DNA of 64,000 bases from Schmidtea polychroa. Lineage: Eukaryota. The translations under genes were made by a program, and so were the position numbers. The stretch's first letter is position 1. Every line of letters begins with the position of its first letter. The notes beneath the pieces were generated by a model. It searched no databases, was not told where the DNA came from, and saw only the letters and a list, made by a program, of their open reading frames with translations. Shown one piece after another: positions 4,951-47,542 of the stretch. Location: assembly GCA_044892525.1 (NCBI GenBank), contig CM097885.1, forward strand, positions 157,108,001 through 157,172,000. Direction: 5' to 3'.

Positions 4951-5022
4951 TCTGACCGAGATGCTATAATTGTTTTCGTTAAGCACAATGACATGCATGC
5001 TTCACCACTTAGGCAGATTGTA

Positions 5023-6172
5023 CACCCGTTTCCACATGTTAAAAGTCTTTATAATACATGTTGGTGTGTTCATCTATCGATGACTCACCATTTATGAGAA
5101 TGTTTATTTCATTTTTTCATTCTCAATTCAATTTTATTTATGGTTTTAGAAGTAAGTTTTTTAAATTTAAGTATATTTTAAGGCTTGAATTTTGATTTCA
5201 TATAATTATGAGATCATTATTCAAGCTCTTAAATATTACTTGTAATCAGCATTTATAATATATTTATAATATATTGATAATATATTGATAATTAAATTTC
5301 AGGTGCTTTTTTAGGTATTTTATGATATGTTATGAATTTGGAATTATTTCAATAAAATGTAAGTTATATATATTTTTAACTAAAAAGAAATAAAATAATC
5401 ACCAAAAACATTTATTTTTTTAAGAAATAATGGTTCCAATCGATTTTTTGGAGATTCCCAGTAATCTTCCAAAATCTTTATAATTTTCTCCATTTTCATA
5501 TGGATTGATGAGACGGATTTTGTCATTTTCTGAAATTCTTTGAAAATATTATTTTTTTTTTAGTTATTAAAATTTACGATTTTCGAATTTTTTTCTTCAA
5601 TTCCAAAAATGTCGATGGAACTTGTTGAATATCTTCACACAAAGGCGTTTGACTAGAAATATCTGATATGCTGTAAAATATTTTAATTATTTGTAATTAA
5701 ATAAAAAAATTCTTACATTGTCAGATCTTCACCTTCGCAAAATGGAAATGTCTCCAAAGAAATATCTGAAAATCTAAAGAAATATTAACTTCAAAAATAT
5801 TTTATAAATAGATCTTTCGATGTTTTGTCGTCCATTTCTCAAAAACTCAAAGTTGAGTTGTCAGATTCAAAATCCAAATTTTTTTCAGCCATGAATTTTA
5901 ATAATTTTAAATTAATGATATGTTAACAGTATGTTAATGACTCTCTACTTTCGGAACAAAAAAAGCTATATTAAATTTGCGTGTATTTTATATTATGTGT
6001 CCTGTGTTTGTATGTAAAATTATTTTTCTGTCACTTTCTCAATTCCTATAATAAAACTTTCTACATTCGGAACATTAAATTTTTGCACACAGGTAAGTTT
6101 GTGTGTTGCTATAATATAATTTTATCGATTTTTTTTTAGATTATAGAAACTCTTATATTGTGGAAACGGGTG
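5023..6172 (-). mobile_element. 1.15-kb non-autonomous Tc1/mariner-type TIR element, copy 1
   Basis: Perfect 14-bp TIRs CACCCGTTTCCACA / TGTGGAAACGGGTG, flanked by TA (5021-22, 6173-74). Body nearly identical to 56139-57260. Confidence 0.9.
5420..5892 (-). pseudogene. Inactivated copy of the 4-exon HTH gene
   Basis: Same exon structure as 56516-56991, but exon 1 has CGA>TGA and the intron-1 donor is GT>GA. Same terminal TCT-TAA stop. Confidence 0.8.
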
Positions 6173-6923
6173 TAGTGAAAAGGCTGACGTCACCATTACA
6201 TAACATTAGCAAGGAAATATTGAGGCTGCATAATTAAGCAGTTTGATTTCGTCATTAGCAGACAGCGAAACAACCAGGGGTGAGAAAGTACAACTTGATG
6301 ACAGATAGAGTAGGCATGCATCACAATGTGTTAGGCCATATTAGTAACATGAATAGATGACAACATTTCCACCCGACCGCTTACAACTCCGCGTCGCTAT
6401 GACAACTTTTTCCGCGAAAATTTAAATAAATTAAGTTCACAATTTCCGATTTGAAACAAACCAAATATGCTTTTCTGATCTAATTACAACTCTAATAGAC
6501 CCGTCTAACGTAAAAGGACTCCTACCACACGGCATTTCTTTTTTCTATAATACAACTCGTACATACTCTGGCAAAGTAAAAGCGTCATGAGAGAAACGTG
6601 ATTATTAAAGTATAATAACAATAATGAGAATTAATAGTGACCACCATGGTGAATAAATAATCGTAGAATAAATGTATAAGTCAAAGTTAGAATAAATGAA
6701 TTATTTTTGTGGAATTCCCGTTTTCCCCGCATAAAATTTTAAGGATTGTGTGAATTAATTTTGAATGTTTGAGGCCTGAATAAGTTAATGGATGGTCGTT
6801 AGTATGCAAAGGCGAACTATTTTGAGTTTATGGATGAGGGAGGTGACAAAACTCGCGTCATAAACGTGTGATTATCGATCGACAAAAGTTTGTAAGACAT
6901 GTGTAAACTTTTTTAATCTTTAG

Positions 6924-7685
6924 ATGACTACTATAACCAATACTGGAAAAACTCTTCGTCCCTGCTTCTCCTGCGCCGACAAAAACGCTGACATCGCGCA
7001 GCTTCAACTCTACATCGGGGCACTTAAAAGGAGAATAGATCTCTAGGAGGGTACGTGGTTCTCCCCGCCACAAATGAAGGAGGAGCGTAGTAAGATCCTG
7101 CGACTGGAGCATTGTCGCGATAGCCTCCTGGAGGAGAGCCGAAATCAACGATTAACGATAAAGGCCCAGTCCGAAGCCCTCCACAAGGTTTATACGGAGG
7201 CAGAATTGGCCAAGAGAGTGCGCGAGTTTCCTGTCATCGACGGAACAAATGCTTTTCCCTTCCACCATCTGTCATCTTCAGCCTCCACCACAACTTGTCA
7301 AGGGCACGGTCCACATCTACCGCCCATCCCAGCCCCAGTGCTGTCTGGATACCTGCCCATGAAAGGTGGCCCATCTGACCCAATTCTGGCCCCGATTCTC
7401 GTGGCTCCTACCGTCAGTACGGTTGAAGAAGAAAATCCGCCACCCCGAAAACGAAAACATCCAACTCGGGCCGAGAAGAATAGAAAACGCAGAGATGCGA
7501 TAAAGGCGCTCGAGGCATCATTATCTGCAGCGCAGTCAAAACTGACCGAAGTAGCATCTACCCATTCGATCCCCTCGAAGGAAATTTTTCACATTGTCCC
7601 GGCCAACGGCATTAAATTTGTCTCGGATTGTCGATTGCCGGTCGACATCGATGAGATAATTGTCGATGGGGAAGATTTCGCCTAG
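6924..7685 (+). CDS. EGTWFSP-family coiled-coil/basic protein, copy A (253 codons, one in-frame TAG at 7044-7046)
   Basis: ATG 6924 is in frame with track ORF 7074-7685: MTTITNTGKTLRPCFSCADKNADIAQLQLYIGALKRRIDL*EGTWFSPPQMKEERSKILRL... Followed by a Pro-rich linker and basic PRKRKHPTRAEKNRKRRDAIKALE. Alignable to 14065-14550. Confidence 0.6.
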
Positions 7686-8071
7686 AAACAATCCAAGCCG
7701 ATCTAGATTTTCTCTTCGAGTTGTGATTCAGTTTGTAAACGTCGGTGACGCTGAATGTTCAAATTGATTAAACGTTGTTGAACTTATCCTTGATAGTGCT
7801 GTAACTACTTTGTGTTTTTCGATGTTAATATATTTTTCTGTTCGATTTTGTCTTGTGAAGCTTCAGTATGATTGATCTTAGAAATCAGGTTAAACGAAAT
7901 GATACTGTGAGATGAGTGAAATCTGGAAGAAGGTCGTTCCCTTGGACCAGGATCGAACCGTGATTGATGTATGAATGGGGGTAAGTCCTTCTAAGGCACC
8001 ATGGAACCTGAACCGCGAGAGGGTTATCAGTAGTCCTAAGGTAGGGGCTCACCTGTTAGCCAACTCCAACC

Positions 8072-8115
8072 CGTGTGGGCAGTACCAACGTGGAACATCG
8101 CCACGGGCTCACGCG
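8072..8115 (+). other. Conserved two-stem structured motif, copy A
   Basis: P1 CGTGTGGGC (8072-80) pairs with GCTCACGCG (8107-15; 2 G-U). Loop AGTACCAA (8081-88). P2 CGTGG/CCACG (8089-93/8101-05). Single G 8106. Same architecture at 14829-14869. Confidence 0.65.
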
Positions 8116-8236
8116 TGGGAATATTCGGATGATCATTTGGTGTATGCATGGGAAGTGTCTGAGCTGAACCATGAGGTCTGACATGTTGATGGTTATGCGT
8201 GTATGGGTTTCTTCTCCCTCATATGCCAACATAGTG

Positions 8237-9046
8237 CAACGGTTCTTAAACGTAGGTCGCGACCCACTTTTGTGTCGTGGAGCATTTTTTCTTGGGTCGC
8301 GGAGCATTTTGACAAATTGAGGCAAATTTAATATTCTTTGAAAATTTTTTTACATTTCAAGCGAACTTTAGTTTAAAATTTGCTTGATAAGAAAATTCTT
8401 ATGACTATTAACAAAAAATAGCTTTTTAGTGATCATTCAGAAGAAAGTTTAAAAATTAAATTTGTTTATTCTTAAGAGTATTGTTTAAAATATTCAATTC
8501 AAAAAATTAATACAGAAATTTACATAATTTAAAAAACTGTATTATAACTTTCTATTTAAAAAAATTATTAAAATTGAAAATTTATATTCCTCATTATTAA
8601 AAAGCATGAATATAAAGAAAAATATTTGGATTTGGGATTTACATATATAATTGTAAAAGGCGAATATAGGCCTCAATGTGTTTTATGTGGCACCATTTTA
8701 AGTGCCGAATCAATGAAACCAAATAAATTTCGAATGCATTTTACGACAATGCACAAAAATTTTTAATTTGACGAAAAAGATCAGAATTTCTTTAAATCAC
8801 AAGAAAATTTAATAAAAAGGCAACGTTTAGATGGGCCAGGAAATTCAAGTTTTTTTAAATATTACTAAACAGGCATCATTAGCTTCATATCATGTCTCAT
8901 GGCTGATAGCGAGGCAGAAGAAAGCTCATAACATTGCAGAAGCATTAATTTTTTTGAGTACTTTAATTATTTAAAAATTTTTTTGGGTCGTTTGGAGAAA
9001 TATTTTAGGATTTTGGGTCGTGACCAAAACTCCTTAAGAACCGCTG
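8237..9046 (+). mobile_element. Buster/Charlie-type hAT internal-deletion derivative
   Basis: TIRs CAACGGTTCTTAA / TTAAGAACCGCTG. TSD ACATAGTG / ATCTAGTG (6/8, central TA). Frameshifted N-terminal transposase: GFTYIIVKGEYRPQCVLCGTILSAESMKPNK...H...KQASLASYHVSWLIARQKKAHNIAEALI. Confidence 0.88.
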
Positions 9047-11169
9047 ATCTAGTGCTTCTAGATGTATAAAATATCATAAAATGGGAAACAAAACCTTTAC
9101 TTTTACTGTTAATGATTGGCGCTCAATCAGTCAAAACAAAAACTAATTTAATGATGTCTGTTATGTGTTATCTGATGGTTTTATTTTATTTATTTACCCT
9201 ATTTATAGTTAGGTTTTAGAAGTAAATATACTATATTATGTTGATTACTATTTTCTTTTGTCAATTTATGCTAGGAAGATTTGTTGAACCCGACAGCGTC
9301 ACATGTGTTGGGCTAGAACTGATTTCTAGACCCAAACTTCTAATTGTGACTGAAATGTGTAGGTACATAACATGCAAAAAAGCAAAAAGTATAGTTAAAT
9401 ATTAAACATACACCAAATAAACAATGGTAATTAAAGGAAGAAACAACAAAAAATAAACACAGAAATTAAATAAAATTATACCAAAAGCAAGACGTTTTGC
9501 AAAATCGAACTCAAAAATAACCAAATAAACATAGAGTTACAAAAAAACAGACTCGAATAACTTAAAAGACGGTAAAAACAGTAAAAATTCCAGAAAAACC
9601 CAGAACATTCCATAAAAATGGCGATGACCATCACAAAAGCCATCTAGAACAATAAAAGTTAGAGAAAATAAATAAATTAGTACTAAAAATAAAAAAATCT
9701 TAAAAAGAAATTCATAAAACATCAGTTAAAATAAAAATAAAATTAAAATTAACATGGAATGTTCTGGAACCGTTCCAAATCCATCATGGACGTCAAATTA
9801 ACGAAAAATAATTAAAAAATAAAAATTTAAAAATAAAAACAAAAATTATGGCACAAAATTGCCATTAAAAATATCAAAATCGCAAAATAGAAAATTCTGG
9901 AATAAAAAGAATTCGAGTTTGTTTTAATGCATCAACACATACACGTGTACTTGCACACACAAAAATAGGTACATATACTGACACGTTTCGGTCACAATTA
10001 AATCCATTTTATGCCAAATTTTTGTCAACAACAAATCGATAGTGAGTATTAATGTTCGATTGTATTTTTATCTTATGATAGTAATTATACGTAATTTTGA
10101 TTAGAAAATTAATTATGTTTTAGCCAAGTCGTTTTTTGAATTTTCTTTTGGGGGTGTACGAATGATCAGCGGCGTACTGGTATTCCTGCGTCGCTGTTCA
10201 GTCCTGCATCCAAATTAACTTAAATTCTCATAGGACAACATGCAGACATGCATTATTGATATTATATTGATATTATATTATATGGTTTTTTTGTTCGGGT
10301 CCTTCGGAGGTTGAACCACTTCATGGTCCTACCATGGAGTTAAGTCGAAGAAACCCTCCGCCTGACTCTTCTTATTTATTAAAGGTCAGCCGTAAATGGT
10401 TGACTTACTATACAACATTAAGGTTTGTCCTAGTGGTCCCAGTGGGGCTGCGAAAGCAATAACTCTTACCGACCTTTTACGTAATACACAATTAAAATCA
10501 ACATTTAAAATCATGGACAACAACTCTACACTAAGGTCATAATTTGAGTAGAACTCATACCCAAACTTACACAATTCTGCAATCACATTAATGTAGCTGG
10601 TTGATCAGTAATAACAATTTTAGTTATGCTTAGACATATGCCGAATTAGGTTTTGTAATAGAAGCTTATGGTAATCGAAGTAATAGAAATGATAAAGATA
10701 TTCGGCCTACGTCTAAGTAGAACTTAATCTAGATAGGTCTTTGAATTAATTATAAGGCTAACAAATTCAATGTAAATGTAGATATTATAAATCTAACAGA
10801 GTAAATTACGAATCCAAGTGCCCATCTTAGAATATTTATAAATGTATAATCACTTAATTATAAAAAGTTTCGATTAATCATAAAAATATAAGTTATAAAT
10901 AATTACGGGATTTTAGATACAAATTATACTGATCCTGAAAATATAAATTAGTAGTGGAGAAATTTTGATGATAAATTATAGACGAGGGATAGTAATAGAT
11001 AAATTTTAGTATAAAAAGTCAATTAACTTGGAACTAGTTATATATAGGTTATAGATGCGTTAGAACTCTGAAATTATAACCCATAAATAGTACCAAGAAA
11101 TCTGTAAGAAATTTGGAAACAATGTTGATCATAAAAAGGAATTCATAAAGAGGTATATAAAGTCGACTA

Positions 11170-11440
11170 TAAAATTATAAATCATAAAATATAAAATTAT
11201 AAATTATAAAATATAAAATTATAAATTGTAGAATATAGAATTATAAATTATAAAATATAAAATTATAAATTATAAAACATAAATGTATAAATGGTAAAAT
11301 ATAAAATTATAAATTGCAAAATATAAATTATAAAATATAAATTTCTAAATTGTAAAATAAAAAATTATGAATTGTAAAACGTGAAATTATAAATTATAAA
11401 ATATAAATTTGTAAGTGGTAAAGTGCAAAATTATAAGTTG
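11170..11440. repeat. Degenerate AT-rich minisatellite
   Basis: Tandem ATAAAATT/ATAAATT-based units. Confidence 0.75.
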
Positions 11441-11616
11441 TAATTCCTTATATATGAATGCTCACAAAAATAAGTTATAAATGCTTATATAATAGTTTAC
11501 AGCTAGGTACAACTATAAATTATAAAAACTATGACTGTTAATATTGTTGAAATTATTATTATTACTATTATCATTAGTATTATTACTATCAATATTATTA
11601 TTGTTATTATTATTAT

Positions 11617-12389
11617 CAGTGCTCGAAGTGAGGCGGGATAGCCGGAATATTATCCCGGCATTGATTATGTAGGCGGAATTGCATCCCGGCACTTCATTTC
11701 ATATAATCTATAGGTTTATCCCGGTACTTATTTCATTTTATAGGCACACAAATACTGCAATTAAGGTCNNNNNNNNNNNNNNNNNNNNNNNNNNNNNNNN
11801 NNNNNNNNNNNNNNNNNNNNNNNNNNNNNNNNNNNNNNNNNNNNNNNNNNNNNNNNNNNNNNNNNNNNNNNNNNNNNNNNNNNNNNNNNNNNNNNNNNNN
11901 NNNNNNNNNNNNNNNNNNNNNNNNNNNNNNNNNNNNNNNNNNNNNNNNNNNNNNNNNNNNNNNNNNNNNNNNNNNNNNNNNNNNTCAATTAAGAATTTCC
12001 CAAGCAGCAGTAATGGATAGGTAGGTATATTCTCTTATTTATTTTAGTTAAACCAGCAAGTTGTTTGTTCAGTTATTTATACTGCGACCCCCTCTATATA
12101 TAATGTGTCTATATATAAAATTTGTTGGACACCCCCCAAAGTTTTGCAATACACCCAACTGAAAATTTCTGCATAAAAGCCTGGAATCCCGGGTGCCACA
12201 GCATGCCTATCCCGGCACATATNNNNNNNNNNNNNNNNNNNNNNNNNNNNNNNNNNNNNNNNNNNNNNNNNNNNNNNNNNNNNNNNNNNNNNNNNNNNNN
12301 NNNNNNNNNNNNNNNNNNNNNNNNNNNNNNNNNNNNNNNNNNNNNNNNNNNNNNNNNNNNNNNNNNNNNNNNNNNNNNNNNNNNNNNNN
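11617..12389. mobile_element. Second copy of the CAGTGCTCGAAGTG hAT MITE, broken by two N gaps
   Basis: 11617-11768 and 12118-12222 nearly identical to 544-915. Gaps at 11769-11984 and 12223-12389 hide the right TIR. About 115 bp of extra sequence at 12001-12117. Confidence 0.8.
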
Positions 12390-13475
12390 TAATTATTATT
12401 ATCAATAACTCAGATATTCGCGTATATACCATTAGTCATGAATGTATTATTAATTATATATGTTATGGTGATATCTATCGGTCGTATATATAAATGCTAT
12501 ATAAATTGTATATTATTATTATTCTCAGTAATTATTAATTATAAAAAATCAATATCCCGATCTAATATCGATTTAGGGATTTCCCCAAGAAATTAAATTT
12601 AGAATTAACCCTGTGATCCAATAGGAAGGATCAAAATTCTCGAAAGGTATTTTTAGTAACACCCCCCCTGGGAGAATGTCACCATCATTCGGGTCGCCTG
12701 GGGATATGGGTGAGGGGGTATGATCCACTACACAAGCTAATACCAAATGGATAATCAAACATACAATTGTTATTAAATTAACATAGACAAGAAACAAAAG
12801 AATTATTATAATTTTTATTCGAGCAATAAATTACCATGCACGATCTTTATGAACAAAAAATCATGATTCCTGACCAAGAATCGTAGGACGAGTTCCAGAA
12901 GCTGAACCTCGATATCTCCAGCTGGAAAGAATAATCATCAATTGTCCCTAAATTGAAATACATGATAAATGCATAAATTACCTTAATATATAAAAGATGC
13001 TGATCCCACTTATAACGAGTACAACCAGAGGAAGAGTAAGTGAGCAAGAGACTGAGCTCTTCACTAGTACCCATCGCCTGATGTACCCGCGGCTAGTGGA
13101 ATTATTCATAATTATTGAATTATCTGAAAAATTTAATATATATAAATTCAAATTACCAACTAGTGGTAATAAATTTTTTAGGATTAAAATAATAATTTAA
13201 AACAAAAGTAATTTTTGTGAAATTGTCGGTCGAGGCATAGATTTTCTAGCCTTAATGCTTAACTTTGATAAAATTCTTCTTTAATTTAACTAATTAAAAA
13301 GTATATCAATAAATTGAATCGAAAATTTTAGGTTAGAAACATTTATTTTAATTATAATAAATTTGGTAGTTAGAGTACTATTTGTTTTAAACAAGAAAAT
13401 TTTGTATATTTTATCGTAACGTCAATTTATAAGTCACATTGGTTATGCACGGGTCTTAATATTTATACTACAGGC

Positions 13476-13825
13476 ATGTCCCAATCAGATGATTTCAGCG
13501 ACGGAGAAGCCGATCGGCAAATGATCACCCGGCTCCGTACTCTTACATTTGGTACCGTATCCACGATTGGAATCGTGGATTGGACCTTGATAACTTCGGC
13601 CCAGTTATCCGAAGTGGCCATGAACCTGATGCCCCGGCGTGGGTGAAAACGGAGCCGGAGAACAATGCGCTACAAGAGGCCAGTGATGTAGAAGCCGCTC
13701 AGGTCCGGCTTAAGAAAATCGAGTTACAAATCCGGGCAAAGAGAGAGGGAGTGTCCCTGGAGGAACTTGAAGAAGCCGAGGCACCCCCACGAAAGAGAGG
13801 GAGGCCCCGCAAGCGCCAAACGTGA
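13476..13825 (+). CDS. Small AT-hook protein (probably one frameshift near the 5' end, or a spliced 5' end)
   Basis: Frame open 13493-13825: ...YSYIWYRIHDWNRGLDLDNF...WVKTEPE...RLKKIELQIRAKREG...PPRKRGRPRKRQT*. Contains AT-hook core KRGRPRK and psi-K-x-E motif VKTE. ATG 13476 (MSQSDDFSDGEADRQ) joins this frame if one A is restored in CAAATG. Confidence 0.55.
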
Positions 13826-14064
13826 TCGTTAGATGACAATTAACTTAACTTAGTCATTTCAATCATCGATTGCTTCCTAACTAAATCATAGGAATCATCT
13901 GGTGTTTGTTATTTAAATAAAGTATTTCTTGTAGTTTTGTAATTCAAGTAGGTGATTGAGCGAGTACAATAGTGTCGTAAGCGGTAAAGCACTAATGTTA
14001 ATTAATAATTTTATTACTTGTTTGTTCTAATTCTGTTTGGTATGAATGAAATTAATAACCTTTT

Positions 14065-14550
14065 ATGCTTTTAGTGTATAAATTAATGGAAAACCTGCGA
14101 CAAGATCGGGAGCAGGCCCAAAAACAAGCTGACGAACTCCGTGTCCGAGTTGATAAACTGAAAAGGAAGTGCCGGGAGTTTGAGGGGACCTGGTTTAGTC
14201 CCAAGGCAATGAAAAAGAAGACAGCCCAGATTCTCCAGCTACAGACACAAGCCGCCCAAGACCAAATGAAGATCCGCGCCCTAAAATTGCAGGTGCGCGC
14301 GCTCGAAACCGAGCGAAACGAGCAGTTTGTACAGGAAGCTGTGGCAAGGCAAATCCGGCCGCTGACCGTTGAACTGGCAGCGATATATCCTCCAGCCGCT
14401 GAAAGTAAACCTAAGCGAAAGCGGCTAGCACGGAACATCAGAGAGAAATTAAAGAAGGCCAGATTGGCCGAATACGAACGACAAGTCAATTCGTCAACAT
14501 TACAAGCGTCTACGACGGGGCTAACCAGCTCTACCAACAAGCCGATTTGA
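14065..14550 (+). CDS. EGTWFSP-family coiled-coil/basic protein, copy B (161 aa)
   Basis: Uninterrupted GC-rich ORF: ...LRQDREQAQKQADELRVRVDKLKRKCREFEGTWFSPKAMKKKTAQILQL...KPKRKRLARNIREKLKKARL. Alignable to 6924-7685. Confidence 0.65.
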   Translation: MLLVYKLMENLRQDREQAQKQADELRVRVDKLKRKCREFEGTWFSPKAMKKKTAQILQLQTQAAQDQMKIRALKLQVRALETERNEQFVQEAVARQIRPLTVELAAIYPPAAESKPKRKRLARNIREKLKKARLAEYERQVNSSTLQASTTGLTSSTNKPI

Positions 14551-14828
14551 ACTTTTATGAATTTCGTTTTGTATATTTTTGTAGTGTGTTTTGTATATTT
14601 TTGTAGTATTAAAATAATACATATTTTTGTAGTATTAAAATAATACATGATATATTTTATTATATGATTGCCTGAGGAATGAGAGTTTGTGTGTAAGGTT
14701 GGGAAAACAATTTCGATAAGGGACCTGAGGAAATCGGACATAAACCTTCTAACGGTAGTCCGTGAACCCATAGAGTACTCGACAATTATAGTGCCTCGAT
14801 GCGCTCACTTTTTGCGAGTACTCAACCC

Positions 14829-14869
14829 CTTGGTACAGTACCAACGTTGATTACTCAACGGGTACCAAG
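14829..14869 (+). other. Conserved two-stem structured motif, copy B
   Basis: P1 CTTGGTAC (14829-36) / GTACCAAG (14862-69). Loop AGTACCAA (14837-44). P2 CGTTGA/TCAACG (14845-50/14855-60). Single G 14861. Confidence 0.65.
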
Positions 14870-15980
14870 CGGAAAACAATATTGTATCCTGGGTTACGCT
14901 GGTAACAGCATAAAATCGTAATTATTCAACCACCAGTAACCCACCACATGTAAAAATATGTGGCGGGACAGTTGGGGTGCCTGTTCAAATAATAATAAAG
15001 TTAAAATATAAAATTAAACAAATTTAACAAACGATTTACAATTCTAACTTTTATTGAACAAAGAAACAAACAACCTGAGTTAGCTTCCTCGGTAGTACTT
15101 TGATTGATGAGAACGACAGGGTCTGATAAAATAAATAATTCAGAATGAATAGTTCGTTGATTGATTTGAAATATCACAGGAATGGAAGGAAATTCAATAA
15201 GAATGTATGATGTATTGATAAATTTTGAAGTACTCAAGTAATGTTCGCAGATTAAATTATTTCCTTTTGATTTTTAATCTTTCTATTTCTTGGATTTATT
15301 TTTTTTCGATTTTTTTATTTTCTATAGCGATAATTTACTATAGTAATTTTTTTTGGGCTATAGTAAATTTTACTATAGTAAATTATCGCTATATAGTCTT
15401 TTTAAATATTTCGTTATTTCGACCCTTCGTGCCAGAACCCAATGATAACGAAAGCCTAATTGGGATTTTACGATCGTTGATAAAAACCATAAAAATATAA
15501 CCATTTTGCTATCATTGATAAAAACCATAAAAATATAATAATTTACTACAATGTCTATCTCATTTTTGGTTAGAAATTATATAATTGCTTTTTAAGAGGT
15601 TGCAAAGCTATTAACTCTTCATGAATATATGTAAGTATTACATACTGATCTAGGAGGCTAACTTTTCAATATCCTCAATGTCAAAAACTAGGGAAATTCC
15701 CATTGCTATTTCATGTCTTTAGTTTGTTGATTTGCAAGATCTGCAGCCATTTTAGTCATTCTGTCATAAACTGTTTTTGTAGATATTGGGGTGTTCAAAG
15801 TGTTTATATATATTCTACCATGGCCAAAAATCATTTTTTGATATATTTACCTTATGCAAATATTTAATTTATAATATTTTTCTTTCTTATATAGAAATAA
15901 TAATAGATAGAAAAAAAGATAATAAGAAACATACGTAAATATAAATTTATGGGAGAATATTCTCTTAATAATATAGCATT

Positions 15981-16066
15981 TAAAAAATTGACTATGAATC
16001 GTAAAGATATCCCTGTTTTTTTTTGATATTCACGAATTTTCAACACGGCCTTTTTCAAGTGATTTT
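15981..16066 (-). repeat. Dispersed ~85-bp repeat resembling a Penelope-like terminal repeat
   Basis: Reverse complement reads CACTTGAAAAAGGCCGTGTTGAAAATTCGTGAATATC...GATTCATAGTCAA. Related copies at 24686-24743 and 31274-31446. Confidence 0.55.
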
Positions 16067-17969
16067 AATAATATAGGTTTATTTATTTTAAAGTACAAAA
16101 TAAATAATTAACATTCTTTTTTTGTTTTGCACATAAAGCTCGGTGGGTCGGTATATATTTACTATTAGTTTTAATATTCAAGTGTCTATATTTCTTTATA
16201 TTCTGAAAATCATAATGTCTCAGGGACTTAATTTTCATTTTATTCAATTTTGGTTTATCATCAAGGTACCAAAATGCAAATTAAATTTGGAAAAATGCTC
16301 TTGTATATAATAATTAAAATAATCCCGGGTTGCCGATCCATAGTATATAGCATTTGTCATAGATTATGGTGACAGACTGGTGATGGGAATAATATCCTTG
16401 AAATCTATTTCATCTGTTTGGCCTTTTAGTGTTTTTATTTTATATTACTTTGTATTATGTATATAGGAAAAAATTATAAACTTATTTGTTTTAATAAATA
16501 ATACAAGAAGACAAAAATGATTATATTTATAAAAATTATAGAAATTCCAAATATTCATAAATTATTATCAAATTTACAATATTAGTTTTTTTTAAATGTT
16601 GTAAAGTAAAGTTCGACATGTTGAAGTTGTTAAAGGTCTATTATAAAATTTAATTCTACAAAATTGATCCATTTCCTAATATTGTTGCCCATATTTAGAT
16701 TATTATTCACTTTTAATTTCGATTAGGGATTTTTTTCAAATATTCCATTTAAACAACTTACAATCGACGAAAAACAAGACAAATGTGACAAACTGTTAAA
16801 ACAATAATATCAAATTCTATTTTAATAGATTGGATCAAATGAAGTGTTGATCTGAATCATGAACATGCAGCTGTGATAATTATTGCAATCATGTGGCTAA
16901 TTTGCAAACATTTCCCAGCGGCTGCCGCTCTCGTCAACATTCCGAGCCATGTTACTAAAAGTTTTTCTTAATTAAAAAAATTGTTAGATTTGTAATTTTA
17001 TAATTTTTCTTGCGTAATTCAGATTTATTGACGTTTTTGTTTTAATATCACGTGGAAAATTAATTTTCCATTTCCTCAATCTATTAATATTATTATTTAA
17101 TTGGAATTATTATTCCGAATTCCCATTATGGTTTCAGGAAAACCTTATTTCTTCAAAATTTGAGCGACCTTCCCTCTAGGACAAGAGGATCTCTGCGTGG
17201 AAAGCCAAGATGCTCAGTATAGGCCGTATAACCAAATGTGCAAGTGCAACATTTTTACACTTCTGCACAATTGGTGACTTCGTAGTTGATGTTATATTTT
17301 AATTTCATTGCTGTTTTTATTTTAGAAAATTCAAATTAAATTCAAATAGTAAACATTTTGTTTGGTTTGGTGATTTTTGGCGTGCGCACTAGCTTGTGAT
17401 AACTCTGCGGGGCTTTCAAAAAAAATGCGCTTCTGAGCACACACGCAGTTTAGAGAGAACGTTGTTGATGAAGTTTGAAAATTATAGAAAAATTTAGAAA
17501 AATTATTTTAATTCATAAAAATAATAAAAAATATAAAAAATTTAATAGTAATCTTTTTTGAGGTTTTTAGCAGGTAACAAATGAAAAGATAAATACGAAT
17601 ACAATAATATAATTGCGACATAGGTATACTAATTAATTAACAAAATAATCACTTTATATGATAAACAAAATCCTTAAGTATGCATTTTCGCATTTTTTTT
17701 AATTGGGATAAAATAATTTTAGTTTATTCTTTAGTTTTCTGAAACATTTCTTATTTTTAGAAGTTAGCTACTATAAAAGAAAAGGGAAATTTTTAAAAAT
17801 CGAATTAGTGATAGTAGTAGATATGTTATCCTCGCTCAACCAAGATCACCCATAGTTAAATCCAACTCAGGCTTAAAATTCTTCAAATCAGACATAAAAT
17901 TATTATTATACAAGTTTTTAATTTTCTACCAAAATGTGACAACTCACTTATTTAAACAAATTCAGATAT

Positions 17970-19410
17970 CTAACTCTCTTCTTCATAAGAATTTTTCCAC
18001 TTCTTCAGCCACTCGATTTTTCTTTCCTTCGTTCCTTCTTGTGAATTTAGTTCGACTCGATGAGGTGATACAAATTTGATGATTTTATATGGGCCATCGT
18101 ATTGCATACCATCCTTGTGTCTGTTCTGCGCTTCTTTACGTACGAGTACCTCCTCCACCACCTCGAAAACACGAGTGCCCCTCTTTTCTTATCCATAGCT
18201 CTCATAGTGTCTGCGGCTTTACTCGAGCTAAATCGCGTCTTCGATTCTTTCGCTTCTTGATATCTCGGCTTGTTTCAGGTTAGAGTGTAGGTTAACACTC
18301 CGTCCATAAATTATCTCAAATGGTGATAAACCTGTAGCACTTTGTCGACTGCTATTTATAGTGTACTCATTTCTGCGTAGAAGTTCGTGCCAGTTTCTCT
18401 CTTTACATCCACCTGCCAATGTTGCTGTAATAAGATCTCTTATCGTTCGTATGGCTCTTTCGGCTAAACCATTTGATTAGTGCTGGTAAGGTGAGCTAAA
18501 TTACTGTTTGATTCCAAATTTCTGTAGCTTCTGTCTTAGGAAATTCCCTTCGAAATTGTGGCCTCTATCTGTTAAAATGCTCTTCGGTTTTCCGAATCGA
18601 TAGATCCAACTATTAGGTATCGTTTTGAAAATTGTCCCTTTGTCTTGCTTTGTGATTGCAGTTAAAGAAACCAGTCTGCTAAACCGGTCCACCATTACTA
18701 TCATATATTTTTTATGACGTTTATTTTCATGTAAGCCACATCAATAACAATCTGTTCTAAGAATTCAGAGTTATATCTAGTAATAAATGTTTCCTTGGTT
18801 CTTGTCCGATCGATCTTTCTCTTAGCACAGGTCTCGCAACATCGTAAACAGAGTTGGATTATTTCTTTCATTTTCGGTCTATAAAATATCTTTTCCATAT
18901 AATTAAATAATTTCTTAACTCCGATGTTCTTCATGTAGGCCTGCAGATATTTCTGGGATTAACATTAAAATATTTTTGTTCTTTTCTACTGTTATTAATC
19001 CTCCATCAATTCGTGTATTTTTTACGTTAAAAGGAAAACAATTTTTTTTTACCCGTGTTTATCCATTTTCCAATATCTCGAAACCAAATGTCCTGTTGTT
19101 GTTATTCCCATACTTTTTCCATAACTTCTGTTCTTTTGATTATATATATATATATATAATCTTTGATTTTTCTTCCATAGCTTCTTCATGTCTTGTTTGA
19201 AACTGGTTGGAAATCATCCATCTGCATTCGAGTGTTCTTCACCTTTCCGATATTTTAGTTCAAAATCATATTCCGACAGGTTAGCTATCCATGTTTGATA
19301 CTTCTAGCTTATTGGTGTTTTTGTAGTGTTTAAGAAAACCGATGCTTTGTGGTCGGTGCGAATTATTAATTTCTTCCCGTAAAAAATATTCTTTAAAATG
19401 CTTTATTAGA
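17970..19410 (-). mobile_element. Ty3/gypsy pol remnant (RNase H end plus integrase), frameshifted
   Basis: IIRTDH...WIANLSEYDFELKYRKGEEHSNAD; zinc-binding CETCAKRK; IVIDVAYM; VMVDRFSR; FGKPKSILTDRGHNF; ATGLSPFEIIYGR; GPYKII. Stop at 17970. Confidence 0.9.
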
Positions 19411-19645: not shown

Positions 19646-21353
19646 CTGTAAAATCCCGAGTATAAGTTGCAGCGCGTATTAGCTGCAGATGACATTTTTA
19701 TAAAAATGTATTTTTTAGTCCTATAAACCGCAGCACATAGTAGCTGCACCATTTGCGTTGAAAACACATGATTTTTAAATCAGCAACCTATCATTAAAAA
19801 ACAAATTTCACCGTGACAATAACCATTTTGTTTTAATCGTTTACATTGTTTACATTGTTTACATTGTTTATTGCACTGTTTTGAATCCTTGATTAAAATG
19901 GATAACGATTCTGAACAAAAACAAAAGAAACAACGAAGATCTTTTAGTTCAGCAAAGAAAAAAAGAAGTTATTGAATAAAGCTCGTCTGTTCGGAAACAT
20001 ACGGGGGTTGCAAGACGATATGATATTAATGAAACTGTTATTCGACGATGGATCGCCCAAGAGTCTGTTATCAAAGCAATGAATCCAAATCGAAGATCTT
20101 TGCGTGGTGGTAACGCTATATATCCGGAATTGGAAACGAAATTACACGAATGGATCCTAATTCAACGTGAACGAGAACTTCAAGTGTCGGTTGTTCGAAT
20201 TCGTTTACAGGCACAAGTAATTGCCAAAGAGATGAAAATTGAAGGATTTGTCGCGAGCTCTCAATGGACTGATAATTTCATGAAACGCAAGAATATTTGT
20301 GTTCGACGGCCTACCACGAAGCAACAATTACCGAAAGATTGGGAATTTCAGATGGCCAAGTTTAGAAGCACCATCGCAGATTTAAAGAAGGATTTGCCCG
20401 ATAATCAAATTGTTAATTTTGATGAAGTGTCCATTCAATGTGACATGCCTTTAGGGTACACAATTGAGACTAAAGGTGCCAAAGAGGTCCGAATTAAAAC
20501 TACAGGACATGAGAAAAAACGATTTACCGTCAATCTATGTGTTCTCAAGGATGGTACTAAACTTCCGCCATTTGTTATTTTAGGCACAAAGAAACATCCA
20601 AAGACTTGCATTCCTGAATCAAAGCTTGTTATTGCAGCTAATGGATCTGGGTGGATGAATCATGAAACTCTTGAGATATGGCTCAAGAAAGTATGGAAAA
20701 GTCGAATTACATTTCCTCCAAAGACACCATGGAACCAGGATCCAAAAGTACCATCATTGCTTTTATTGAAATATGCATCGCTCACATCTTGACAGTACTA
20801 CACTTGATAAAATTAAGAAGGAATCCAAAGTAGCTTTCATATCTGCCGGATTTACATCAAAGGTGCAGCCATTAGATCTTACTGTTAACCGTTCGTTCAA
20901 GTCAAAATTGCGCAAGAAGTGGGAGGATTGGATCATTAAAGAATATGAAAACATCAAACATACTAAGTCCGGAAATATGAAAGCAGCTTACTGGAATACT
21001 ATTTTCGAATGGATTGTTTCTTCTTGGGAAGATTTTAACCTTTCCACCATTTTGAATGGTTTTTATGTTGCATTCGGTGAAGACGACGATGTTCTTGAAA
21101 TTGAAGAAAATGAAATCAATGTGAACGAGTCTGATCCAAACATTGTAGAATTACTAGAAAATTTCACTTTTATTGACAATGAAAAGTGTGATGGTTTTGA
21201 GGAGTGTGATGTTGAAAATTGAAATAAATAATCTTATCTTCGATTTGAATTGTTTTTTAGTTGTATAAGCTGCACATCATATTAGCTGCAATTCAGAATT
21301 GTTGCCTTAATGTACGTATTAGCTTATGTTAGCTTATACTCGGGATTTTACAG
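19646..21353 (+). mobile_element. pogo/Tigger-family DNA transposon, full length, frameshifted transposase (19898-21222)
   Basis: TIRs CTGTAAAATCCCGAGTATAAG / CTTATACTCGGGATTTTACAG with TA both sides. CENP-B-type HTHs (VARRYDINETVIRRW; YPELETKLHEWI) and DDE_1 motifs NFDE and VQPLDLTVNRSFK. Frameshifts near 19970-20005 and about 20770. Confidence 0.93.
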
Positions 21354-29602: not shown

Positions 29603-31122
29603 GAAAGTGCCGCTCGAAAATTCGTTTAACGATATAATTCGACATTATTCCTGCCATCATCAGGTAGGATAGAATAACTATAGAAATTATTGATTTATTA
29701 ATTATATATTTTTAATAAAAATATTTTATTTTGTAAAAACTATAAGTTATAATTTAATTAATAAATAATCTTTTTAATTGTAGCAATTAGGAAAAATGAA
29801 ATTTTAAAATATTGAAATTTAAAATTATTCAATTTAATAATTTAATAATTATTTAATTTAACAATAACAATCCATACAAAAAACTATTTAAAAACTGAAT
29901 TTTGATCGTTAATTTTGGGATCCAATGACTTTATCAAAAACGCTTCACAATTTACACGTTCCCAATAATTATTGAAAGTTTTTAATAAAATTTCAAAATC
30001 AGACATACCAATTTTTCTCTTACATCCCTTATTGTGCTCACTAATATTGTTCAATGGGTTCAGTCTATAATGTTCTCGAGCTCGAATACGGAAATGTAAT
30101 TGGGTGTAATGTAATGGTTGTAATGCCACATACATTAGAAATGAGATCAGAAAACAATCCAACTTAGACTTATTAATAAACATACTTTACTTTACTTGAA
30201 TTTGACATAATCTTATAATTAAAATTATCCAACTGCTTACAAAGAAAAAGACCATGAACGATAAATCGATCCCTTCTCTTATACTTGAATTCACAAAAGC
30301 TTTTGGGTGAATTACAGAAACCAGTATTGGTTGGGTTTTTATAATTCTTTTTGTCGTAGTGTTTCTCTTTGCGTTGTATTAACAAATCCAAGAAACCAAG
30401 TGATGATTTTTTTTCTCAGTTTCACATGTGAGTGCAATGTTTTTATGTAGACTATTCATATAATGCAAAAATGGCTCAATATGCCTCTGATGGTCAAATA
30501 TAAGAAAAATATCATTCATATACCGTTTTAAAACAGTGGGTTTCATAAATTGAAAAATGAAATTTTCTTTTCTAAACTTGCTAAAAAATTGAAGCCATTG
30601 TTGGTACTAAAGGAGAACCCATAGCAACTTCATCTCTTTGTTGATACCATTTATTACTGAAAAGAAAATTGACTATTGAAGTAGCAAGAAAATCACGAAA
30701 TGCACTCCCATCCAAAATATGATGTTCAGAGATGTTTTCATTCCATAACAAGTAACATAAATCAATAGTTTCAACCAATTGTACATTAATAAACAGACTA
30801 CAAACATCAAACAAAACCATAATTTTATCGATACTTTGTCTATCATATTGTGCAATGCAGGAAATAAATTCAAAACTATCTTTACATTCAAACTCAGATC
30901 GTATTAATGGTTTTAATAATCCATTCAAATATTGGCTCTTTTATACTGAGCAGCACCAACCATGGATAAAACAGGTCACATAGACACATCATCTTTATGG
31001 ATTTATGGAAGCCCATACCTTTTTGCTGGTTGTTGTAATTTCTATAGTTATTTTATCCTACCTGAAAATGACGAGGAAACTGTCGAAATATATCGAAAAA
31101 CGAATGTTTGAGTCGCGCTTTC
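29603..31122 (-). mobile_element. 5'-truncated Penelope-like retroelement (RT + GIY-YIG) flanked by inverted terminal repeats
   Basis: RT: MVLFDVCSLFINV..ETID, YQQRDEVAMGSPLVPTMASIF (30581-30928). GIY-YIG C-half: RAREH...SDFEIL...RVNCEAFLIKSLDPKIN (29884-30183). About 87-bp inverted repeats at 29603-29690 and 31036-31122. Confidence 0.85.
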
Positions 31123-31273
31123 TTATAATTATATTGTTGACATGTATATTTAAATATTTATTTTAAAATTAAAATTAATATTTTTATGTTAATTCTCTTT
31201 ATTATTTTAATTTAATATTTTTTGAATATTTTTTCTAAGTTTTATATTTAAATTAATGTTAATTGTATTTATT

Positions 31274-31446
31274 AAAAAATCGACTATGAATCGATAAAGA
31301 TATCGATATTAATTTTGATATCCATGAATTTTCAGTACAACCTTTTTCGAAATTTCGGATCAAAATCACTTGAAAAGGCAGTGCCGAAAATTCGTGAATA
31401 ATAAAAAAACATCGATATATTTACTGATTCATAGTCAATATTTTAA
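31274..31446. repeat. Head-to-head inverted pair of the ~85-bp Penelope-like repeat
   Basis: Left arm GACTATGAATC...CATGAATTTTCAGTACAACCTTTTTCG is the inverse of right arm CTTGAAAAGGCAGTGCCGAAAATTCGTG...GATTCATAGTC. Inverted symmetry extends into the AT-rich flanks. Confidence 0.7.
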
Positions 31447-44800: not shown

Positions 44801-47542
44801 AAAACACAATGTGATAAATTTGGATCATTTCTGTGTAACAATGGTAGATGTATCGAGTCTGGTTCGTCTTATCAGTGTCAATGTAATACTGGATACCAAG
44901 TATCATTGGATGGAAAACAGTGTTCAGGTATTTATATTATCTTCAATGTTTCAAGCAAGTACTTTTAGATATTGATGAATGTTCAATGAATCCATCAATC
45001 TGTGATCAAGGAACTTGCATCAACAGTCCTGGGAGTTATCAATGCAGCTGTTTTGATGGCTTCACGATTCATAATATGCCAGGAGGACCAAAGTGTTATG
45101 GTAATTTCAATATGAATTTCTTTCAAATTTCGCTGCCTTTAGATCGAAATGAGTGCACTGAAACAACATCACTCTGCAAAAACGGAATCTGTAGAAATAC
45201 CCATGGCTCCTTTGAATGTCAATGTAACTCTGGATATATTTCTTCAAACAAAAAGCAGGATTGTGTTTCCGTGCAAGATAATTCAGGTTTAACAATTTTT
45301 CTAAAAAATAAAATTAAAGAAATTATAGTCAACATATAATTATTATTTGTCATTTTATAATATTAACTTAAAACTTTGACAACAATTCAAATTATTTCAT
45401 TTTTGCTTTGTTGGACAAAAGCTAATAAAAATAACACGGTGCGTGGGGTGTTACAAGAAATTAAGCAATAAACATGAACGCACTATTGCTGAAAATCGAA
45501 TAAGACAGGTCAACATTCGTAATAGTAAATGCTTAAATATTATTATATCGAATGCTTCAATGGGCTTCATAAAAGTGTGGTTAATTTTTCAATTATATTT
45601 ATTGTTTTTGATCTTAATTATTCCTGTCCAAAAAAATAGTTTAAAAGCAGAGTCATTCTTGGGGCTATTATTTGTAGGAGATTCGTAGGGTTTCTAATAA
45701 CTCTAAATAATCATAAAAATCCACAAAAAGTCAAAGGTTTAAAACAATCAGTCTGACGGGTGAGTGATTGTAAGTGTTAATAGAAAAAGTAAGATTAAAC
45801 ATTATTTCCATTTAAAACTAAACTTTTAAAATTTTAAAATCACGAATTTATTGATTTAATGTCTTAAATGAAGGAAAAGAAATGGAAAATACTTAGTCAG
45901 TGAAGATAAAAAATGATTTTATTGGTAAAAATAAACGAGGACAAAACTTTTATGTGTTTGGCAAATGTTATTTTATATTACATTTGATAAAAATGGTGCT
46001 CACGACTTGGGTTACACGGGGAAAATCTTTTGATTTAAAAGTATAATAAAAATAAATGAAATTTTAAAATATTGCATTAATGAAATATTTCAGTATTTTT
46101 GACGCCATGGAAAAAATCGCTATAAAATATAAAATATTTGTGATGGTTATATGATTTCATTTGATTGCATCGAAATTTAAAAATAAAATTCCTAAAGGTT
46201 TTATAAGTTGAAATTGTAAAACCATTTGTAAAATTATGGAATTCATTGTTGAATATGATATCCAAACAATATTTGATAGTCAACAGTTTAAAAGTAAGCA
46301 AGATTTTTAAAAGCGCCACTGAAGCATTACAGTAACGCGTTCATATAAAGCGGTTTTATAGGGATATTTGTCATAATAAAATAAAATTTTAATTTATTTT
46401 TACGGAAATGACAAAAAAAAATATTTTAAAAAGAATTGAAAAGTATTGCATGTATTTTATTAGGATGTAAGTGAGTTGTTCTGAATTAGAAATAAATTTG
46501 TTTTAATAATTAGAAGCTAATAAAAAATCACTTTTGAATTTGGGTACAAATACTTCAAAAGCTTTTTTGTATAGGGAATTTTTTTCTCACGGATTTTCGT
46601 ATAGGGTATTTTGGGTTCAGGCTTTTTCGAACCAGTTTATGGTCTCATGAATTTTTGAACTAGATAACATAGCTAAATAACACTGAAGTGAACCTAAAAA
46701 CCCCAGAATATTTAGTGTGAGTTTCACATTGACATAAATCCTGAGGCTTCCTGCTGACTCTAGACTTTTTATCAAGACTTTAAATTTCAAGACAAATATA
46801 CTGCTAAAATACTATTCCTCACTTTGTTTCCCAACTCTTAATAATCATAATGTAATAATTATATTTATTTATTATAAGCTTTATAATTTATTGTTTAGAG
46901 GAAAATTAATTTTTAAAAAATTTGTGGAAAACCCATTAAAAATGAGTTTTAACACAAATATTTCACTCACTCTTCAGTAGAATTCTGGTTGCGCCTCTGT
47001 TACTTTGTCATTTGCAGTCTCCGCTAAATCACTAAAGCACAGGGGTTATCATTGAAAAAATGTTGAATTATTTTGCGAAATAAATAAAATTTTTATCAAC
47101 AGATCATTTAATAACATTTTCATAGATCAAAGATACGATACAGAGTCTACAAAAATCTGCAAAAAATGCTCCCATTACTGCAAATTTTCGAATGGGGTAT
47201 TCAAATGTTCGTGTCCAAACGGACTGGATGCAGTACTGGAAACAGGGTACTGAATTCTAATTCCATAATTAATTGAATCGGTTCTAATTTGATAGATTAT
47301 GTGCCAAAGTGTCACAAATAGTAGATGTTCAATTCGATATTCCTGACAATGTCAGAGTTAAGCGCAACACCCATCCTAGCTTAAATAATGTTTATTTTGA
47401 GGTTGTTTCTGCAACTGATATAGAAGATTTCCGATCCAATGTGACAACACAGTTCAACGATATTGTCTTGGACAAATGCGAATCCTGGACAGAACATAAA
47501 CCGAATTCTGGAGTTCGCTGTTTTTATCATAAGATATCATAA
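32829..47542 (+). CDS. FBN: Miniature fibrillin, 17 exons, 739 aa
   Basis: Exons: 32829-32899, 32952-33034, 33094-33225, 33283-33375, 36509-36694, 36745-36814, 37771-37832, 38663-38782, 43138-43287, 43340-43471, 43515-43661, 44521-44706, 44784-44927, 44969-45100, 45143-45286, 47126-47246, 47296-47542. Total 2220 nt, all GT-AG, phases compatible. Domains: signal peptide; fibrillin N-terminal HICG..CCSGY...CTIPIC..C...C.RPNTC; 2 EGF; hybrid/TB domain (GECF...LCCG...AWGDPCQRC...CEKGF); 9 EGF of which 3 are cbEGF (DINEC, DIDEC, DRNEC); terminal EGF-like; RVKR furin-type site; short tail. Confidence 0.9.
34631..34847. mobile_element. Small foldback MITE in fibrillin intron 4
   Basis: Imperfect TIRs GGCTAAATTAAACTTCTCGGGGTACATAAAT / ATTTATGTACCCCTGAAAAGTTTGCTATAGCC. 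CAAAT on both flanks. Confidence 0.7.
35375..36408 (-). mobile_element. Decayed, internally deleted mariner (DD34D-type) in intron 4
   Basis: Imperfect ~20-bp TIRs (TA)GGTGGATTGATAAGTCTTTG / CAAAGACTTACCAAATCGCC(TA). Remnants ITNDETWIHYF..P..Q, IFWDGYGLIF, GF*SNEE. Confidence 0.85.
37880..38500 (-). mobile_element. Possible Mutator-like transposase remnant in intron 7
   Basis: Frameshifted HNTSLAEGYHN..FKNEIND...NPNIF resembles the MULE C-terminal TNN..EG.HN...PNI motif. Boundaries approximate. Confidence 0.3.
39386..40779 (+). mobile_element. IS630/Tc1-like DNA transposon, full length, decayed ORF from 39527
   Basis: TA|CAGGGTTTTTACCC...GGGATTAAATCCCTG|TA, with long imperfect TIRs containing TTGACAAT repeats. 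HTH, then FIDE, IMDN, LSPYSPLLNLIENIFSKLK. Confidence 0.88.
41420..41763. mobile_element. Buster-type hAT MITE (344 bp)
   Basis: TIRs CAGGGGTTCTCAA / TTGAAAACCACTG. Perfect TSD ACGTACAA (41412-19, 41764-71), central TA. Confidence 0.92.
41980..42900 (+). mobile_element. Decayed Ty3/gypsy pol fragments in intron 8
   Basis: MSKSLWEKIGMPKL (protease region); YYIRFIKSYVRITEPLY; HEKGYCIIGKELLAV; HTNHNPL; KYNFELKYRNEEDHSNA. Boundaries approximate. Confidence 0.7.
43952..44358. mobile_element. hAT-like MITE in intron 11
   Basis: Right end ...CTAGTCTGTTTAACGGAAGAACCGGGTCTG, degenerate left end TAGTCCAGTTC. TTTGGCGGCCCT near both ends. TSD TTTATTTG / TTTATATA (6/8). Confidence 0.55.

Follow-up and report, generated by a model that had tools for sequence, protein, structure and literature searches.

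Two diverged GC-rich coding islands in Schmidtea polychroa belong to an undescribed flatworm protein family of possible mobile or viral origin

Among the closest described systems to the locus presented here are the ORF1 protein of LINE-1 retrotransposons (ORF1p), together with its HAL1-type, ORF1-only derivatives, and the delta antigen of the Kolmioviridae. In this paper we describe two open reading frames (ORFs), copy A and copy B, in a 64,000-nt stretch of the Schmidtea polychroa genome (GenBank assembly GCA_044892525.1, contig CM097885.1, positions 157,108,001 to 157,172,000 of the forward strand), which we call the window. The two ORFs are distant homologues and belong to a protein family on which a literature search found nothing. 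Their product might be the only protein of a small mobile or virus-derived unit that is not autonomous, and the main rival to this suggestion is a host gene family.

Like ORF1p and the HAL1-type derivatives, the proteins of this locus are small and are predicted to combine a coiled coil with a basic part that could bind nucleic acid. The genetic layout is also similar, with one ORF followed by a 3' untranslated tail, no enzyme of its own, and dispersed copies of which some are intact and others decayed. Unlike ORF1p, however, the proteins do not match the Pfam family Transposase_22 (no Pfam match at E <= 1), and their AlphaFold2 (AF2) models contain only helices and disorder, without a globular domain resembling the RNA-recognition motif or C-terminal domain. 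Neither a poly(A) tail nor a target-site duplication (TSD) was seen, and the tail of copy B is followed only by AATAAA and an A-rich stretch. Gag proteins of retroviruses and long terminal repeat (LTR) retrotransposons are a further point of difference: there is no Pfam gag or zf-CCHC match, and the islands that contain the two ORFs lack flanking long direct repeats.

The delta antigen shares with this family a length of 160-210 aa, an N-terminal coiled coil, arginine-rich and proline-rich segments and a GC-rich unit of about 1.6 kb. In contrast to delta agents, the copies described here are chromosomal DNA, no Pfam HDV_ag match was obtained, and neither a delta nor a hammerhead ribozyme was detected in the islands (Rfam, E <= 10). 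The minimum free energy of island A is -445 kcal/mol, against -461 for its shuffles, with a median pair span of 32-45 nt. A delta-like agent was rejected for the lack of a rod-like fold, of ribozymes and of an HDV_ag match.

Copy A and copy B resemble each other far more than chance would allow. Copy A is a single reading frame that is broken by one in-frame stop, with no frameshift detected, and was compared either as separate pieces or read through with X at the stop. The Smith-Waterman score of the pair is 106, against 35.8 +/- 5.3 (maximum 62) in 2000 shuffles and a maximum of 66 in shuffles that keep the local composition in blocks. Masking the motif leaves a score of 55, compared with 34.8 +/- 5.2, and only 5 of 2000 shuffles exceed it. 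The piece of A behind the stop matches B at E = 1e-6 (BLASTP), and a tblastn search of B against the whole window returned a single match, at 6924-7235 (E = 2.8e-7). A third family copy in the window was found neither in this way nor with the family hidden Markov model (HMM). The abundance of K, R, E, Q and L in both proteins pushes alignment scores up and might suggest a chance similarity between two coiled-coil-like ORFs. But none of the 2000 shuffles reaches the real score, those of local composition included, and independent relatives connect both copies: P0002-P0010, numbered like the other relatives described below, match copy A in one single frame (tblastn, E 5e-11 to 6e-13), with alignments that extend across 6924-7574. 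On these sequence comparisons the chance reading is excluded, and we regard A and B as confirmed, distant homologues.

At the DNA level no similarity between the two ORFs could be detected. In the seven-residue motif, EGTWFSP, 14 of 21 bases are identical and all 7 differences are synonymous; they change five of the seven codons, and the motif serine is drawn from two different codon families. As the differences in the motif are purely synonymous and DNA similarity of the ORFs is absent, the conservation must lie at the protein level. An initial annotation, made from the sequence of the window alone, had placed both ORFs at these positions as homologues conserved for their protein, within GC-rich islands of very AT-rich DNA, and our comparisons and the composition described below bear it out on each of these points. 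The same annotation supposed that the ORFs represent a wider family, and this too turned out to be correct.

A profile of A and B was searched against 1.84 billion representative proteins (E <= 1e-3) and found 10 relatives, to which a later search added P0012, so that the family now has at least 13 sequences. The best match (E = 2e-19) is P0001, an intact protein of 157 aa. P0001 and the near-identical P0011 are encoded on two GC-rich environmental contigs, L001 and L002, which come from two different ENA samples (ERZ2271643 and ERZ2270917). The 3' ends of these contigs fall on the identical base, 21 nt past the stop codon. The literature searched gave nothing on the two sample accessions. Copy B is 48% identical to P0001/P0011 over 100 aa (E = 1e-27), and P0001 and B are conserved over their full length, have their start in common and are nearly equal in length. 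A word-index protein search with copy B alone gave no match, and one with a seven-sequence profile gave P0001 only. Scans of IMG/VR and of JGI metagenomes returned no family relatives.

The other nine relatives of the first search are UniParc gene models in which the module is fused to other sequence. The Pfam domains found in nine gene models are SNF (a transporter), GDC-P (the glycine-cleavage P protein), Peptidase_S8 (a subtilase), CRAL_TRIO, Actin, Ribosomal_L21p, CH, Y_phosphatase (a tyrosine phosphatase) and DUF4371/hAT. Each model has a different domain, these are mutually unrelated, and the module can be N-terminal, in the middle or C-terminal. There are ten fusion models in total, nine of them with a recognised domain. 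Nine different host domains beside the same module imply that the copies are dispersed, and the gene models are best read, from their sequences, as chimeric predictions that span such copies. Three relatives (P0002, P0007 and the truncated P0012) are truncated or diverge abruptly, so that intact and broken copies occur side by side in the family; a match to a second module in P0012 was not significant. Judging from the sequences found, the family seems to be multicopy, dispersed and restricted to flatworms.

Two types of protein can be distinguished. Copy A represents a long type, with roughly 250-300 aa, and copy B represents a short type of about 160 aa, to which P0001 also belongs; both are apparently intron-less. 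Long-type models match only copy A in the window, and short-type models match copy B. A and B are thus two old, diverged members of the family. In an alignment of 12 sequences, W at the fourth position and P at the seventh position of the motif are invariant, and T at the third (11 of 12) and G at the second (10) are nearly so. The remaining positions vary: E (4), K (5) or L (3) at the first, F (7), T (3) or S (2) at the fifth, and S (6), A (3), P (2) or R (1) at the sixth. The exact seven residues are common to A and B only.

The composition of the two copies differs strongly from that of their surroundings. The GC content of the window is 29%. At third codon positions the GC content (GC3) reaches 52% in A, 54% in B and 60% in L001/L002, compared with 29% in a host exon with epidermal growth factor (EGF) domains in the window and 32-40% in its hAT, pogo and integrase ORFs. 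The non-coding tails of A and B are also GC-rich (44-55%). The GC content of both copies stands 20 points above that of the genome, non-coding parts included, although the two have diverged past any DNA similarity. Between copy B and L001 the proportion of synonymous differences is saturated (pS 0.86), whereas that of nonsynonymous differences is 0.43 (pN). Together with the synonymous-only differences in the motif, this shows purifying selection on the family protein. For the GC content, a recent arrival of two old lineages fits better than a long residence in a genome of 29% GC and explains the bias more easily. A GC bias that is selected or driven by conversion may be an alternative cause.

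The AF2 model of copy B (mean pLDDT, the predicted local distance difference test, 77.5) has a helix at residues 2-43, a break of two residues within the motif, a second helix at 46-107, a short linker, a basic helix at 119-149 and a disordered end. For the piece of A behind the stop, the model begins with one long and one short helix; about 80 proline-rich residues without order follow, and then a basic helix and an end that is again disordered. In these models the long helices reach a pLDDT of up to 97, the basic helix is rich in R and K, and the predicted template modelling score is about 0.3. The shape predicted for the family thus has two long helices that meet in a kink at the conserved T-W-x-x-P motif. 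A proline-rich linker without order connects them to an arginine/lysine-rich helix, behind which the protein ends in disorder. The coiled coil, proline-containing linker, basic stretch and helix that had been read from the sequence initially agree with these models, and the statement that no known family was recognisable was upheld by every library searched. Pfam and PHROGs contain no family common to the members, sequence profiles of the PDB gave only non-significant coiled-coil and Jun matches, and Foldseek libraries, including the PDB and BFVD, gave nothing at E <= 0.001.

Two of the weaker likenesses concern the basic helix. The Jun/AP-1 proteins of the basic leucine zipper (bZIP) class have such a helix, and Jun chains matched there are the only notable PDB sequence matches of the A and B profile. 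But their E-values (0.7-7) are not significant, a 12-sequence profile loses them, no Pfam bZIP family is matched, and the helix is predicted to be about 30 residues long, without a heptad run of zipper length. Arginine-rich-motif RNA-binding proteins such as those of Pfam REV share an arginine run in a short helix. Only one of 12 members matches REV, however, with 19.1 bits, below the cut-off of 22 bits, and the likeness is compositional only.

Both ORFs are part of larger units, whose features are listed in the table. The common layout is a GC-rich ORF, an AT-rich spacer of 120-195 nt and a GC-rich tail of 300-450 nt. A tblastx comparison of the two tails showed no similarity at the protein level, the family proteins do not match the tails in tblastn, and their ORFs have no Pfam match. 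Coding tails were rejected on these grounds. What the tails do share is a collinear block of about 50 nt, with a score of 33 against 19.1 +/- 2.3 (maximum 30) in 1000 dinucleotide shuffles. It contains the 12-mer CAGTACCAACGT, which within the window is present only in tail A and tail B. The 3' part of the block could fold into a 5-bp stem in A as well as in B, and at one pair of this stem both bases differ between the copies (G-C in A, T-A in B). We treat this stem as a lead only, as it is seen in two sequences and has no energy signal for A. Tail B folds more stably than its shuffles (-122 against -97 +/- 6 kcal/mol).

Table. Features of the two units in the window (positions are those of the window).
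Feature	Positions	Strand	Basis
GC island A (1560 nt, 46% GC) with copy A and its GC-rich 3' tail, separated by an AT-rich spacer	6821..8380	+	GC-island scan, 100-nt GC profile
Copy A, long-type family member	6924..7685	+	ORF list, tblastn of P0002-P0010, family HMM E = 1e-62, AF2 model of post-stop piece
3' tail of copy A, 47-55% GC, apparently non-coding	7880..8330	+	GC profile, no Pfam match
Conserved 3' block in tail A, with 12-mer CAGTACCAACGT and a short possible hairpin	8047..8095	+	Local alignment
GC island B (1624 nt, 42% GC) with ORF pair C, copy B and a GC-rich 3' tail, in this order and separated by AT-rich spacers	13400..15023	+	GC-island scan, GC profile
ORF pair C, GC-rich, acidic then basic with AT-hook-like end, one frame change	13476..13825	+	ORF list
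Copy B, short-type family member, intact 161-codon ORF	14065..14550	+	ORF list, relatives P0001/P0011, AF2 model
GC-rich 3' tail of copy B, followed by AATAAA and an A-rich stretch at the island end	14670..14980	+	Sequence, GC profile
Conserved 3' block in tail B, corresponding to 8047-8095	14803..14851	+	Local alignment

Island B additionally carries ORF pair C, which lies 240 nt upstream of copy B, has a helix after its acidic start and a GC3 of 57-59%. No relatives were found for it, and a Pfam AT_hook match is sub-threshold only. The basic end of this pair shows a weak tblastx similarity to A (E = 0.014), but hhalign found no relation, and we do not count it as a third family member. In copy B (14065-14090) and in L001 (144-190) the sequence TTTTAGTGT is found at codons 3-5, followed by an in-frame ATG, and in copy A the ATG is immediately preceded by TCTTTAG (6915-6926). 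Judged by their sequence, these acceptor-like stretches may be splice or trans-splice acceptors. The upstream regions of A, B, C and L001 have no promoter-like words in common. Within the AT-rich spacer that follows copy B there is a perfect 26-nt tandem duplicate (14595-14646), and a 29-nt inverted repeat with 93% complementarity lies 300 nt beyond island B (15323-15393).

How can these units be explained? We lean, at somewhat less than even confidence, towards the possibility that A and B encode the sole protein of a small unit that is mobile or virus-derived but not autonomous. The ORF and its tail, about 1.3-1.6 kb in length, would then form a non-autonomous mobile element, which could resemble a retroposon or descend from a virus-like agent. 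The protein would oligomerise through the helices, and the arginine-rich helix might bind nucleic acid, most likely the transcript of the unit itself, by analogy with the LINE ORF1 protein that coats its RNA. The conserved 3' block could serve as a cis signal, and the copying enzyme would be supplied in trans by another element. Of the two copies, B could then still be functional and A would be in decay. In favour of this we count the homology, the family, the dispersal beside nine different domains, the truncated copies, the selection, the foreign composition, the collinear 3' block, the protein architecture and the sub-threshold REV match. Mobility, RNA binding, oligomerisation and mobilisation in trans are all inferred.

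Several observations weigh against such a unit. Around both islands the searches for terminal inverted repeats (TIRs), for LTRs or long direct repeats and for TSDs gave only AT-rich chance matches, with no TSD of at least 9 nt and no clear poly(A) tail. No polymerase, reverse transcriptase, transposase or integrase was found in or beside either island, and no parent element carrying the ORF was identified. Two diverged members on the same strand, 6.4 kb apart, resemble a tandem host gene cluster, and the acceptor-like TTTTAG at the ORF starts could mean spliced genes of host type. Furthermore, with about 13 members known the copy number may be low, the 3' block comes from two sequences, and nucleic-acid binding and oligomerisation are deduced from predicted helices and composition only. 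The duplications within the window provided no empty site. The initial annotation had proposed an undescribed mobile or viral-type family, and this proposal stands in part. Its homologues were found, with at least 13 members that match no known family, at least nine host-domain neighbours, intact beside broken copies and a foreign GC3, but termini, TSDs, terminal repeats, enzymes and metagenomic relatives were not.

As the main rival we consider a host gene family that is specific to the lineage and has grown by duplication. Its products would be small nuclear proteins with a coiled coil and a basic part, such as regulators of chromatin or transcription. On this view A and B would have arisen as tandem paralogues, of which A has become a pseudogene, and the 3' block would be a conserved regulatory element of the untranslated region. 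We rank this reading somewhat below the mobile unit. The strand and spacing of the copies, the long-term purifying selection and the missing hallmarks of mobility all speak for it. The short type is conserved from its start onwards between B and P0001, the acceptor-like motifs and AT-rich spacers between GC-rich blocks are reminiscent of introns, and the weak, non-significant Jun matches of the basic helix would suit a regulator, although no helix of leucine-zipper length is predicted to follow the basic region. The composition is more difficult to reconcile with host genes. A GC3 of 52-60% and GC-rich non-coding tails, against 29% in a host exon, would need upkeep through saturating divergence. 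In addition, genes of at least nine unrelated kinds lie next to the copies, several of the copies are truncated, and outside a narrow group there is no homologue among the 1.84 billion representatives.

Endogenous viral elements, that is DNA copies of the mRNA or small genome of a flatworm virus-like agent whose protein has a layout like that of a phosphoprotein or delta antigen, appear improbable to us. They would account for the foreign GC composition, an argument likewise used for densovirus NS1 insertions in flatworm genomes, which are also coding islands with a GC content far above AT-rich flanks (PMC13055364). The unit size of about 1.5-1.6 kb, the predicted coiled-coil and arginine-rich layout, and the intact GC-rich relative on two environmental contigs that come from different samples and end at the same base are also consistent with a virus. 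But unlike the densovirus insertions, this family has no similarity to NS1 or any viral protein, no match to viral protein families or to BFVD structures, no other viral gene nearby and no relative in IMG/VR. Neither island holds a ribozyme in Rfam, and there is no rod-like self-complementarity (pairing 0.55-0.61, median pair span about 40 nt). A more specific version seems very unlikely. It takes the 1.3-1.6-kb units as chromosomal copies of a virus- or satellite-like agent of flatworms, with the coiled-coil arginine-rich protein as its sole protein, the environmental contigs as the form that exists outside the chromosome, and the hairpin-bearing 3' block as a replication or packaging signal. 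We give similarly little credence to the idea that the module comes from a DNA transposon of the hAT type, as its N-terminal exon or as an accessory ORF, and that A and B are remnants that keep only this part. In P0010 the module is joined directly to a zinc finger, DUF4371 and the hAT dimerisation domain, and behind the module P0005 and P0010 have another stretch in common. But this is only one of ten gene models, and eight others join equally unrelated domains, so that P0010 is probably another chimera. There is no hAT-like sequence adjoining A or B, TIRs or 8-bp duplications were not found at the islands, and the hAT element of the window belongs to a different, BED-type family 38 kb away. 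A small circular Rep-type DNA replicon or satellite was considered for the 12-mer beside a short stem, which may resemble a nick-site loop, and was set aside as no Rep was found anywhere.

The window is rich in transposon remains and also contains EGF-type host exons. The hAT element (52167-53966, + strand) is an intact ORF of 599 aa with a BED zinc finger, the hAT dimerisation domain and 42% GC, and may be a young, complete transposase gene. A pogo/Tc5-type transposase (HTH_Tnp_Tc5 and DDE_1) is split into two overlapping ORF pieces at 20079-21222 (+), and fragments of a retroelement integrase (rve) occupy several frames at 18231-18925 (-). An ORF at 30581-30928 (-) resembles part of a reverse transcriptase by eye and has no Pfam match at E <= 0.001. 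The calcium-binding EGF domains at 44920-45339 (+), our reference for host composition, are probably host exon(s). Two mir-753 precursors (5174-5235 and 56290-56351; 81 and 72 bits in Rfam) lie within a segment of 1.1 kb that is duplicated at 94% identity about 51 kb apart (5021-6164 and 56137-57252). The mir-753 family is known from the planarian Schmidtea mediterranea; the literature searched gave nothing on it in planarians. These precursors, the base composition and the K/N/I-rich host parts of the related gene models would suit a planarian or a close flatworm. A short repeat is found once near island B (15980-16069) and twice, inverted, near 31.3 kb (31272-31446) with 82-86% identity, and may be a miniature inverted-repeat element.

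Two runs of N (11769-11984 and 12223-12389) fall into the 6.4-kb spacer between A and B. Both are inside a repeat (11615-12222) that occurs a second time at 542-894, with 99% and 97% identity on the readable flanks. This repeat is unrelated to the two ORFs, neither of which is interrupted. As the N runs are confined to the spacer, only the distance from A to B is uncertain.

What the finding means depends in part on the origin of the family. In either case, ten deposited gene models are fused to the family module, which points to recurrent chimeric annotations in flatworm proteomes. If this is a host family, it would represent taxon-restricted nuclear proteins whose genes maintain an unusual GC bias, and this bias would still have to be explained. 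If the units are mobile or virus-derived, a protein family without detectable relatives would be added to the nucleic-acid-coating proteins encoded by such elements, and GC islands might serve as a compositional marker of recent arrivals in planarian genomes.

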